This document shows positions 15,187 to 36,042 of a stretch of 64,000 nt of DNA, one piece after another. This stretch comes from Salpingoeca rosetta. Its lineage: Eukaryota > Protista > Choanoflagellata. Where the stretch lies: positions 342,597 to 406,596 of the forward strand of contig JAWQFM010000035.1 of assembly GCA_033442325.1 (NCBI GenBank), read 5' to 3'. The first letter of the stretch is position 1. The number at the start of each line of letters is the position of its first letter. The notes under the pieces are model-generated. The model saw only the letters and a program-made list of their open reading frames with translations. It did no database searches and was not told the DNA's origin. The translations under genes and the position numbers were made by a program.

Positions 15187-16053
15187 ATGGCTGCAACAAG
15201 CAACAAGCAAGCAAGCATGCTTCCATCCCTCAGTTCCGTGTCATGGTTGTTGGTTCTTGTCGTGTGCTACACGACCTTCGTGAGCTCGCATGCGCAGACA
15301 GGGGAAATGAACAGGACCAGCGCCTTCATCTACGTGGATGAGAATCGTCAGATGATCCTCCAGGACAGCGAGGCGCGGTTGTCTTTGAAAGATATGCTCG
15401 AGACGCTCAGCAGCCTCCAGCAGACCGTCTCCACGCTGCAGAGGCACAACGCCGAGCTGAGAAGCACAGTGTCAACCTTAGAAAGCCAGGCTACCGCGTC
15501 AGTGGCCTTCACACGCATTGCGGCCATCACGACAGCAGGCACATACGACGTGACAATCTCCATCAACAACAGCAGCGGACTCCCGTCTTCAGTGCCGCTG
15601 TACGCTGAAGTTGGTGGTGCTGGAGGCGGTGGCGCCAGTCCTTCCGCTGGTGGGGTAAACGGTGCGTCGACGTCGCTGGTGTGTCCCTCCATGGCGATGA
15701 TGTGGCTCAAGGCAACGGGCGGAGTTGGGGGCGACTATCTTGGACCGGGCGGTGCTCACGGGTCTGGGGACATTGGGCCGATTCGCTTGGTGGGGCGTGG
15801 TGGGGACGGTGGTGTTGGCGGCGGTGGCAGCGCTGGCAGTTATCGCGTTCCCACCATATCAACTGGAGTAGATGGCGGCAATGGTGGGTACGCAGCTGGG
15901 GTATTTCAACTCACAGCACCCGTGCAGCAGCTTCAGGCTGTCGTTGGGGCGGGAGGGAGAAGTGCAGACCGGTATGCTCAGGACGGATCAGACGGCTTCG
16001 TCATCTTCCATTACCCACAAGGCATGGACATCACCATCACAAACGCCGCCTGA
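15187..16053 (+). CDS. Secreted glycine-rich protein copy 1: signal peptide, coiled coil, polyglycine domain (phage tail fibre / ALK-LTK glycine-rich like); intronless
   Basis: Hydrophobic N-terminus (likely start 15217, MLPSLSSVSWLLVLVVC), heptads LSSLQQTVSTLQRHNAELRSTVSTLESQ, then YAEVGGAGGGG...GGNGGYAAGVFQ...VGAGG...DGSDGFVIFHYP. A clear paralogue lies at 25225-26139. Confidence 0.88.
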   Translation: MAATSNKQASMLPSLSSVSWLLVLVVCYTTFVSSHAQTGEMNRTSAFIYVDENRQMILQDSEARLSLKDMLETLSSLQQTVSTLQRHNAELRSTVSTLESQATASVAFTRIAAITTAGTYDVTISINNSSGLPSSVPLYAEVGGAGGGGASPSAGGVNGASTSLVCPSMAMMWLKATGGVGGDYLGPGGAHGSGDIGPIRLVGRGGDGGVGGGGSAGSYRVPTISTGVDGGNGGYAAGVFQLTAPVQQLQAVVGAGGRSADRYAQDGSDGFVIFHYPQGMDITITNAA

Positions 16054-16525
16054 GTGAACGCTTACTTTGGGCTTCTTTATTCTTCACACCAGTGACACTT
16101 CTCTGCACTCATTTTGCTCACAGTCATCTAAAAGTCTAAACATCTACCATTCTGAAAGCTTGCACTGTCTTGCTTACCCTGTAGCGTGTCGTGTAGTGCT
16201 CAGGTGCTCGACCGTTGCCTTATTATAAACCCAGACTCCCTGTCTCTGTCACGTACTGTGTTCGTTCCCTTCAGCATTTTCTTTTCAGCATTCTCTGCTG
16301 TCTCGTTAATCGTTCACCACAACTGCCCCGCTCTTGATGTTCCCTTTGAAGCACCTATTCGCTCCTGGCCCCGGCGCTTTGTTTTTACGACAACCGCCAA
16401 GCTGCCCCTGCTTGCCATTGATCTCGGTCTCCTGTCGACGTTAGCTGCTGTCACTAGTCTCCTGCTGGACCGCAAAAGCTGTTGCTGGCTTTTGTCTTGG
16501 CTGTTGCGTTGTGCCCCCCTCCCCC

Positions 16526-16597
16526 CAACCAATACATGACATCAGATCGGATGCACTTCGAATTCCTGATGTAGGTCACCGGACTACTAACAGTCGT
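16526..16597 (+). promoter_or_regulatory. Conserved two-box element downstream of glycine-rich cassette copy 1
   Basis: Box A is CAACCAATACATGACATCA (16526-16544) and box B is GTAGGTCACCGGACTACTAACAGTCGT (16571-16597). Both recur at copies 2 and 3. Function unknown. Confidence 0.6.
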
Positions 16598-16838
16598 TCT
16601 TGAAGCAAGGGACAAAGTTCTGACCTCTCACCATGGCAAAGATGCTCGTGATAGCGAGTGAGGGGCCCTTGGGAAGAAGAAGGTTTATCGTCAGCCAATC
16701 ATACCCACACACCACAAGAGTTGCGAACGTCCCAAAAGACAAACCAGTCACCCAAGTCGGGCTATGTCATCATCACAAGGCACACACATACACACACACA
16801 CACCAAGCAACTACCAGCCACCCCATTGCCAGCACTGC

Positions 16839-34775: not shown

Positions 34776-35244
34776 CCTGGTGTGTGCGCGCGCAGGTGGC
34801 AGTGTCTTCGAGTCTAGGTGCACAGAGTTGAGGTGGGGCGGCAAGAGAGGAAGGGGGTGAGGGGAGGTGTGTCGACGCAGTCTTTAAATGTGAGTGGATG
34901 CAGGGTCGTGCCGGTGTCCCTCTGTTGATAGCTGACTCTGTGTGTGTGTGTGTGTGTGTGTGTGTGTGTGTGTGTGTATGTGTGTGTGTGTGTGTGTATG
35001 TGTGTGTGTGTATGTGTGCGCGCGCTCATGATGATTGTGACAGGAGTCCCTTTGTCTCTCCTTCTTCTTTTCCCCTCCCCTGGTGTCATTTCGCTGCTGG
35101 CCAGTTGTGGTGTGGAGTTCTGTATTTTCTTGCATTCGTTTGTTAAATGAAGGCTGTACGTGTACAGGTCTCGAGTGCGGTGTGCTGCGATAATATGTTG
35201 GCTGCTTGCGGAGCGTCATTTCGCTTGTGCGCGCCAAAAGATGA

Positions 35245-35710
35245 CTGTGATGCGATGCAGGGACACGAGAAGAATAAATGACGTCATCTTGCATGCTTTT
35301 TGCACGCCTCATCTGTTTTATTCACAGATGGGGTGCGATTGGTTGTCTTTCTCTTTCGATGTAACACCGCGATGTTCTCCCTTCGCACGTCGCTTTTGCT
35401 CTTCTTCTGTGCGCCAGCTCGTTGCACGACTGTTAGTAGTCCACTGGCTGTGATCTGCTGATCTCTGACGCGATGCAGCAATACGAGAAGAATAAATGAC
35501 GTCATTTTGCACTGTTTCATATGTACAAATGGGATGGGACGCGATTGGTGGTCACAAAAATCAGCAACGGTCGGGCTCTTGGGATGCATGGCGCCATGGC
35601 ACTCACGTTTTGGTTTGCTTACTTCTTTACTTATTGCTTGGCTCGTTCTCTTCGCCCTCACAACAAAGCAACAAGGTTGTTCAACGACTGTTAGTGGTAG
35701 TCCAGTGACC
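35245..35710 (+). repeat. Degenerate tandem duplication (two units, about 35245-35447 and 35448-35710)
   Basis: Both units contain GCGATGCAG...ACGAGAAGAATAAATGACGTCAT.TTGCA and GCGATTGGT, and both end in ACGACTGTTAGT..TAGTCCA (reverse complement of cassette box B). Confidence 0.8.
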
Positions 35711-36042
35711 TACATCAGGAATTAGAAGTGCATCTGATCTGATGTCATGTATTGGTTGGGGGGGGGGGCACAACGCAACAATCAGGAGAAGAAAGATGGA
35801 AGCCAGCGACAGCTTTTGCAGTTCAGCAAAGCAGGAGCAGCTTGGCGGCTGTTGCAGATGACGAGGGCATTGGGCATTAGAGTAAGAGCGGGCAGCTTGG
35901 GAAAAGAAGTACCAAGACAGGCTCAGCAGAGGATGTTGATCCGTCTCGAGCATCCGAGGCTGTACTTCATTATCTTCCCTCCCGCCCCAACAATAGCCTG
36001 AAGCTGCTGCACGGGTGCTGTGAGTTGAAACGCCCCAGCTGC
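35683..36042 (-). pseudogene. Decayed third copy of the glycine-rich cassette (3' coding fragment plus 3' flank with boxes A and B)
   Basis: The reverse complement of about 35937-36042 encodes AAGAFQLTAPVQQLQAIVGAGG, nearly identical in DNA to copy 1 from 15892 onward. 35683-35900 aligns with the copy 1 flank (about 16320-16598) with deletions. No 5' coding part is present. Confidence 0.88.

Follow-up and report, generated by a model that had tools for sequence, protein, structure and literature searches.

The stretch of Salpingoeca rosetta DNA considered here (64,000 nucleotides, nt, of assembly GCA_033442325.1, contig JAWQFM010000035.1, positions 342,597 to 406,596; hereafter the window) holds two intact copies and one relic of an intronless gene for a glycine-rich, putatively secreted protein. 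A sequence-only reading of the window had drawn attention to the three copies, and both the copies and their places are real: open reading frames (ORFs) and alignments delimit copy 1 on the plus strand, copy 2 on the minus strand and a 5'-truncated third copy on the minus strand, in which nothing 5' of codon 232 is kept. As that reading had also said, the copies do not form a tandem array and occur in both orientations, and the intact ones, unlike most of their neighbours, have neither introns nor microsatellites. Copy 1 is unspliced in RNA, and Tandem Repeats Finder reports zero tandem repeats or microsatellites in 14818-17194 and 24090-26563, with neighbours rich in (CA)n. All searches of the genome refer to the S. 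rosetta assembly (55.4 Mb, 68 contigs), in which the window lies on contig C35.

The gene belongs to a small family. Apart from the relic, a six-frame search of the genome recovers exactly five members, all of them full genes; two of these lie on C35 and one each on contigs C4, C14 and C28. The three paralogs outside the window are annotated as PTSG_05356, PTSG_02680 and PTSG_08778, all hypothetical. Each of the five paralogs is a single ORF, so that the family was intronless before it duplicated, and the absence of introns is therefore uninformative on how each copy arose. Between pairs of paralogs the amino-acid (aa) identity is 41-53%, the synonymous divergence (dS, NG86) ranges from 1.27 to infinity, and omega, the ratio of nonsynonymous to synonymous divergence, is 0.17-0.40. 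For copies 1 and 2 the corresponding dS is 1.58, with 53% aa identity and 58% nucleotide identity in the coding sequence (CDS). Saturated synonymous sites, together with these values of omega, indicate that the intact copies duplicated in the distant past and have been under purifying selection. The S. rosetta genes group as a single clade (87/92) with long branches (0.6-0.8) in a maximum-likelihood tree; the gene on C28 diverges first, and the other four remain in a polytomy, with branches of 0.6-0.7.

The birth-and-death turnover that had been proposed for these genes is borne out by the relic on C35 and possibly by the paralog on C4 (PTSG_02680), which is frameshifted. The frameshift lies at ~941650-941700 of C4, outside a homopolymer run, between '...VDSA' and 'LEAVVG...', and leaves the last 43 codons in a different frame, so that this paralog may be a pseudogene or may reflect an assembly error. 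The annotated 399-aa model of PTSG_02680 has a doubtful N-terminal extension. No paper was found on the three named paralogs by PTSG identifier, or on a choanoflagellate glycine-rich tail-fibre family, and the gene family is apparently undescribed in the literature.

The three copies on C35 are set apart from the other paralogs by two short sequence blocks at the 3' end, termed box A and box B. Box A (CAACCAATACATGACATCA) is identical (19/19) in all three copies, and its exact sequence is present at 3 sites in the genome, all on C35 (0 for a reversed-pattern control), an agreement that lies far outside what chance would give. Box B, with the core GTAGGYCACYGGACTAC, is found at the same three places genome-wide and additionally as an isolated fourth fragment, which follows box B of the relic ~255 nt further downstream. 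Copy 1 and the relic have a spacer of 26 nt between the boxes, as against 42 nt for copy 2, and the homology of the three copies ends a few bases past box B, at ACAGTCGTT or ACAGTGGT. These copies constitute a subfamily in which the gene is combined with a 3' element and whose members end at a joint 3' boundary directly behind box B. Neither box is present in the paralogs on C4, C14 and C28, which have no other flank words in common with the C35 copies either. The sequence-only reading had assigned homologous 3' flanking DNA to all three copies. This applies to copy 1 and the relic, which have ~210 nt of the distal 3' untranslated region (UTR) in common, but in copy 2 it comes down to the two short boxes, outside which its 3'UTR cannot be aligned with the other two.

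Boxes A and B are probably held by selection as a cis-element, because an exact, genome-unique 19-mer and a second box have outlasted saturating divergence around them. Two separate short blocks with an unequal spacer and unalignable surroundings also favour selection on two motifs over one conversion tract. The element would act at the mRNA 3' end or just beyond it, in 3'-end formation, in termination between convergent genes or in co-regulation. Folding of the box region gave z-scores from -0.6 to +0.9, none of them significant, and an Rfam scan of 16350-16750 gave no match. Two further candidate explanations of the boxes were rejected. As coding sequence they would share a frame in copy 1 and the relic, but the 42-nt spacer shifts the frames in copy 2; as a mini-intron (GTAGGT...TACTAACAG), box B would be too short at 23-26 nt, and the reads contain no joints. 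The boxes, which are unique in 55 Mb and have been kept through saturating divergence, offer a small and clean target to delete by CRISPR, S. rosetta being a tractable model.

The core of box A, TGACATCA, is one mismatch from a cAMP response element (CRE), a site for basic leucine zipper (bZIP) proteins. Two 49-nt direct repeats (35245-35293 and 35463-35511, 88% identical and 218 nt apart) occupy part of the interval that separates the relic from the next convergent gene's 3' end, a region that is unique in the genome. Each of them holds a perfect CRE palindrome, TGACGTCA (in ATGACGTCAT), and the core of the repeat resembles box A (ATGACATCA).

The relic derives from the lineage of copy 1. Among the copies in the window, BLASTN matches it to copy 1 only, with 15892-15990 corresponding to 36042-35937 (83%) and 16463-16598 to 35828-35683 (84%), and gapped alignment gives the segments 15881-15990 (85%), 16388-16413 (88%) and 16463-16598 (~92%) of copy 1. 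The relic lacks ~400 nt (15991-16387 of copy 1), so that the final 63 nt of the CDS and the greater part of the 3'UTR are missing, and keeps 27 codons, with 81% aa identity to aa 232-258 of copy 1, plus the distal 3'UTR. A nucleotide identity to copy 1 of 83-94%, and a dS of ~0.24 over the 27 codons, make the relic younger than the intact copies. An exact 7-nt direct repeat abuts its two ends; the chance of such a repeat, estimated from random position pairs 371 nt apart in the window, is 0.25% without slack and 1.4% with 3 nt of slack. The repeat, the 5' truncation and the end at the 3' boundary of the family argue for the insertion of a partial copy over a full duplicate that decayed in place, and the relic is probably such an inserted partial copy, derived from RNA or from DNA. 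Of the three C35 copies it alone bears a mark of insertion. It has no poly(A) tract and lies near its donor, which is a poor fit to classical retroposition. A search of 34800-35690 for a fifth relic returned microsatellite matches and the isolated box-B fragment only.

A 146-aa ORF at 35681-36121 (minus strand) spans the whole relic in a frame other than the ancestral. The relic may be transcribed at a low level, since its 5' junction is matched by a 101-nt contig (depth 5.8) from an RNA-like run.

Table 1. Coordinates of the gene copies, the relic and the 3' elements in the window.
Feature	Position	Strand	Basis or remark
Copy 1 CDS, 288 aa, stop codon included	15187..16053	+	uninterrupted ORF
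Copy 1 3'UTR / 3' flank, to the boundary common to the three copies	16054..16598	+	RNA-like contig to 16545; relic homology ends at 16598
Box A, copy 1, CAACCAATACATGACATCA	16526..16544	+	exact 19-mer
Box B, copy 1, GTAGGTCACCGGACTACTAACAGT	16571..16594	+	21/24 identical to copy 2
Copy 2 CDS, 304 aa from the first ATG, stop codon included	26139-25225	-	ORF listed from an upstream TTG
Copy 2 3'UTR / 3' flank	24732..25224	-	holds boxes A and B
Box A, copy 2	24816-24798	-	19/19
Box B, copy 2	24755-24732	-	21/24 vs copy 1
Relic, 371 nt, 5'-truncated, internally deleted, copy 1 lineage	36053-35683	-	gapped alignment to copy 1
Box A, relic	35758-35740	-	19/19
Box B, relic	35713-35697	-	alignment
7-nt direct repeat GAACAAC, upstream member, abutting the relic 5' end	36060-36054	-	exact
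7-nt direct repeat GAACAAC, downstream member, abutting the relic 3' end	35682-35676	-	exact
Fourth, isolated box-B fragment, GCCAGTGGACTACTAACAGTCGT	35426..35448	-	17-nt exact match to copy 1

Copy 1 is transcribed and unspliced, has a 3'UTR of ~0.5 kb and converges on a gene for a TPR protein. An RNA-like run yields colinear contigs over 15170-15886 and 15910-16545, and its depth profile rises from 0 in the flanks of copy 1 to a value of 1354 on the neighbour. In the stranded raw RNA reads at 15352-16385 the first mate maps to the minus strand, a sign of plus-strand RNA for copy 1, and no splice joints are seen in the copy 1 reads. One RNA run (X21) has no reads on copy 1 and another (X22) has such reads. 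In small assemblies of 8-34 Mb, which presumably derive from RNA, copy 2 is represented to 85-97% but copy 1 to only 4-50%, and the stretch 24720-26160 with copy 2 is 85-100% present in many small RNA-like assemblies. With the run types guessed, these figures suggest that copy 2 is expressed more broadly and that expression of copy 1 is weak or conditional.

The encoded proteins share one arrangement of parts. Each begins with a hydrophobic signal or anchor segment (read from the sequence, without a predictor), which is followed by a conserved NASIY..D..G.MVLEDS...VSLKDLL block, a heptad-repeat helix and a GGxGG-rich head that ends in DG.DGF.IFHYP. In copy 1 the coiled coil comprises ~aa 67-100 and the TNF-like, glycine-rich head aa 104-288. 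A short beta region precedes the stalk, which is predicted to be a parallel trimeric coiled coil, and in the head glycine-rich loops are joined to a TNF-like beta-sandwich. The N-terminal segment suggests that the proteins are secreted. The only Pfam family that touches the head is Gly_rich_2 (PF21722), with partial cover of the profile and scores below the gathering threshold of 24.3 bits (16.2 bits for copy 2 and 17-18 bits for distant homologues; no match for copy 1).

An exhaustive profile search with the head yields 67 relatives, which include proteins of Salpingoeca macrocollata, Hartaetosiga balthica and Choanoeca perplexa (the choanoflagellate homologues outside S. rosetta are known only from transcriptomes). 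Others are tail-module proteins of uncultured phages: P0009 (E 6.4e-15) is encoded directly after the tape-measure and tail-tip genes, and P0012 (E 1.9e-11) near an Amidase_2 endolysin gene. The GGxGG motifs align throughout, and the head is homologous to phage tail-module proteins. In a tree of 32 heads, a split with 97/95 support separates all choanoflagellate sequences, together with seven sequences from short metagenomic contigs, from the phage and bacterial sequences. A relative that measures 284 aa and has a membrane or signal segment at its N-terminus (P0014) is found on a metagenomic bacterial contig (L025, 5001-5855). Its gene sits between S10 and L3 inside an otherwise conserved ribosomal operon.

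A model of the head, built from the 32-sequence alignment, has a predicted local distance difference test score (pLDDT) of 93.2 and a predicted template modelling score (pTM) of 0.88. When it is compared with 48,161 chains of known structure, the top match is the tail fibre gp24 of the cyanophage Pam3 (7ypx_A; Z 8.1, root-mean-square deviation 2.8, 119 aa, 24% identity) and the second is the tail tip of the mycobacteriophage Bxb1 (9d93_Qa; Z 7.5, 117 aa, 31% identity). They are followed by generic jelly-rolls at Z ~6 and by TNF ligands and the glycine-rich domain of ALK at Z ~5, the last of these with 21-22% identity, and a first model of the head gave a similar result. A homotrimer is predicted for residues 40-288 with a score of 0.82 (the best of 3 controls reached 0.00). 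The mark is reached by 21/30 proteins solved as one-chain pairs and by 0/23 single chains, a calibration that refers to two copies, not three, and resemblance to solved complexes may be what lies behind a pass. The trimer runs agree in at least 82% of contacts, with a partner pLDDT of at least 81 and in-register a/d contacts along residues 74-98.

The order of parts is the same as in Pam3 gp24 (7YPX), in which a helical trimer stalk is followed by a TNF-like domain and a distal glycine-rich receptor-binding lattice (PMC9608196); the S. rosetta proteins likewise combine a trimerising stalk, a TNF-like sandwich and a glycine-rich tip. Pam3 gp24 and the Bxb1 tip (9D93 chain Qa) are the closest structures to the S. 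rosetta head model. Unlike phage fibres, the S. rosetta proteins are nuclear-encoded, carry an N-terminal signal or anchor and N-glycosylation sequons, and have neither a baseplate-docking N-terminus nor an adjacent chaperone gene, and the solved fibres of Pam3 and Bxb1 themselves show no match to the S. rosetta heads at the sequence level. The sequence-only reading had placed the copies among host-microbe interaction genes. A putative role of this kind is plausible because the head is related to the receptor-binding tips of phage tail fibres, and the proteins most likely work outside the cell, as trimers that bind surface ligands of bacteria or other surface ligands.

Two further groups of proteins resemble the S. 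rosetta proteins. The glycine-rich domain (GRD) of ALK/LTK in animals (7LS0, 7NX3, 7LIR) and the head are both built as a TNF-like sandwich that carries polyglycine loops (101-104 residues match at Z 5.0-5.1 and 18-22% identity), and both occur in extracellular holozoan proteins. This likeness lies in the Z range of unrelated jelly-roll folds and is a similarity of fold only; Pfam gives no match of ALK_LTK_GRD (PF12810) at E up to 1. ALK is, moreover, a monomeric receptor-kinase ectodomain that binds ALKAL cytokines, in contrast to the predicted coiled-coil trimer of S. rosetta. The C1q/TNF superfamily and the collectins share with the S. rosetta proteins the signal peptide, the trimerising stalk and the C-terminal TNF-like head, and members of the TNF family (APRIL, BAFF, 4-1BBL, EDA) match the fold of the head at Z ~5. 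Here the likeness is one of architecture and fold without a sequence relationship, and C1q and TNF lack the glycine-rich lattice.

The explanation that probably holds is that of a small, old and choanoflagellate-restricted family, whose members are DNA-level duplicates, with a selected two-box 3' element on C35 and a later insertion of the relic. The family would have been intronless before its expansion, possibly by acquisition from a phage or a bacterium, and would then have grown by duplication at the DNA level, after which its members diverged for a long time while purifying selection acted on them. The two intact genes and the relic on C35 would represent a local subfamily marked by the two-box element at the end of the 3'UTR. 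Later, the 3' 0.7 kb of the copy 1 lineage would have entered a site at a distance of 20 kb, inverted and with a 7-nt duplication resembling that of a target site, and would have decayed there. Within this account the copy number, the divergence, the uniqueness of the boxes, the unspliced RNA of copy 1, the homology to phage proteins and the likeness of fold are shown, and we infer the secretion of the proteins, the ligand binding of the heads, the function of the boxes and the mode in which the relic was inserted. The dynamics of the genome would then be mostly ordinary, with a small old family and one decayed partial copy, and would include no new kind of mobile cassette. Choanoflagellates eat bacteria and respond to bacterial cues, which makes the family a testable candidate for bacterial recognition, and it is also a possible case of domain transfer from phage to eukaryote. 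The interpretation offered by the sequence-only reading is, overall, partly supported.

Several points weigh against this account. It offers no mechanism by which old paralogs came to stand among housekeeping genes, oppositely oriented and at a distance of 10 kb. None of the fold or sequence matches to solved structures is decisive: a Z of ~8 is borderline by the own guidance of the structural-search tool, Foldseek returns nothing at E <=0.001 from the PDB for either head model, a sequence search of the PDB with two profiles gives spurious GxGxxG and aldolase matches only, and the matches to Gly_rich_2 stay sub-threshold. The 7-nt repeat at the relic was spotted post hoc. At the 3' end of copy 1, the raw RNA reads end at ~16385 and at very low depth, and the contig end at 16545 is not necessarily the end of the RNA, so that the position of box B inside the transcript is only inferred. 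Copies 1 and 2 are not resolved as sisters, and due to this polytomy the boxes could be ancestral and lost elsewhere, or could have spread by conversion.

A bolder version of the account, which we consider unlikely, would make the head a domesticated phage or bacterial tail-fibre head that gained a signal peptide and a trimeric stalk in choanoflagellates and serves in a secreted, bacteria-recognising family, possibly from the stock that was also the pre-metazoan source of the unusual ligand-binding GRD of ALK/LTK. The boxes would be a new cis-signal, for mRNA 3' ends or for termination between convergent genes, and selected independently of the CDS. If it were true, the independent selection of the boxes would explain their survival in the relic.

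Ectopic gene conversion among the three nearby copies could have kept the boxes alike in place of selection. All copies lie within 21 kb of one contig, the paralogs on other contigs have no boxes, and copy 1 and the relic are 92-94% identical over 97 nt of the box region, compared with 83-88% elsewhere. This excess, however, rests on few sites and is statistically not strong. Conversion tracts are contiguous and usually longer than the identity in copy 2, which consists of two separate short blocks (19 and 24 nt) with an unalignable spacer of 42 nt instead of 26 nt, and the adjacent CDS, at 58% nucleotide identity, shows no converted tract. For these reasons conversion is regarded as an improbable explanation of the boxes.

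It appears more doubtful still that the 3' element acts on the DNA independently of the gene, as a terminator or insulator or as a bZIP site of the CRE-like type. Such an action would suit the location of the copy 1 boxes in a ~70-120 nt gap between two convergent transcripts and the identity of 92-94% that the relic boxes have kept though the relic CDS is destroyed. The fourth box-B fragment and the two 49-nt repeats with TGACGTCA between the relic and the next convergent gene point in the same direction, as does the single mismatch between the box A core and a CRE. Yet the element is unique to this family, whereas convergent gene pairs are common genome-wide. The RNA-structure z-scores and the Rfam result have no bearing on this candidate role.

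The sequence-only reading had itself preferred a mobile unit, in which the gene and its 3' element are mobilised as mRNA or via the 3' boxes and seed copies locally, by retroposition or as a non-autonomous element. All copies are intronless, three of them end sharply just after box B, and the RNA of copy 1 extends into the box region; the relic in addition is 5'-truncated, ends exactly at the boundary and is flanked by the exact 7-nt repeat. In these respects the C35 copies resemble processed retrogenes, in their lack of introns, and the relic does so in its 5' truncation, shared 3' end and short direct repeat. Unlike processed retrogenes, the C35 copies have no poly(A), no intron-containing parent and no scatter over the genome, and the intact ones are of ancient origin and evolve under purifying selection. 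In none of the three C35 copies is the 3' boundary followed by a poly(A) tract, no terminal inverted repeats were detected at the ends of the units, none of the five single-ORF paralogs is an intron-bearing parent, and the paralogs share no upstream 11-mers that could represent promoter motifs. Multiple dispersed copies with common termini, as would mark a MITE, a Pack-MULE or a SINE-like element, were not found: the boxes have 3 occurrences, or 4 with the box-B fragment, none of them outside a 21-kb stretch of C35, and the other three paralogs are without them. Random retroposition would place copies within 21 kb of the parent with an estimated probability of ~8e-4. The host, moreover, has no complete non-LTR (long terminal repeat) retrotransposon and thus no complete long interspersed nuclear elements, since a survey of transposable elements in S. 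rosetta lists 13 LTR and 7 DNA-transposon families and, as non-LTR elements, two partial SLACS fragments only (PMC6875170). With five genes and one relic, and with synonymous saturation between the intact copies, the evidence does not support a cassette that copies itself, and a mobile unit of any such kind is very improbable.

Segmental duplication together with neighbouring genes is rejected, since local BLASTN and genome searches of the flanks show no homology beyond the units into neighbouring genes, no sequence outside the units is duplicated, and the C35 flanks of the copies are unique in the genome.

Among the labels that the sequence-only reading had given to the neighbouring genes, Pfam backs FAIM (as FAIM1), ACL4 (as a TPR, ACL4-like protein) and TOM1 (as a GAT-domain, TOM1-like protein), but the ORFs labelled CEP95 and DCAF4 have no Pfam match. 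Each copy had been described as facing the 3' end of a conserved gene with its own 3' end. This tail-to-tail layout is directly seen, from RNA, for copy 1 and for no other copy, the RNA of the TPR gene on the minus strand running from ~16668. On its other side, copy 1 lies head-to-head with a FAIM1-domain gene (Pfam E 4.5e-6) at 14683-15210 on the minus strand, whose likely ATG is near 15012. The RNA of copy 1 begins by 15170, so that both genes would have a very short bidirectional promoter region in common.

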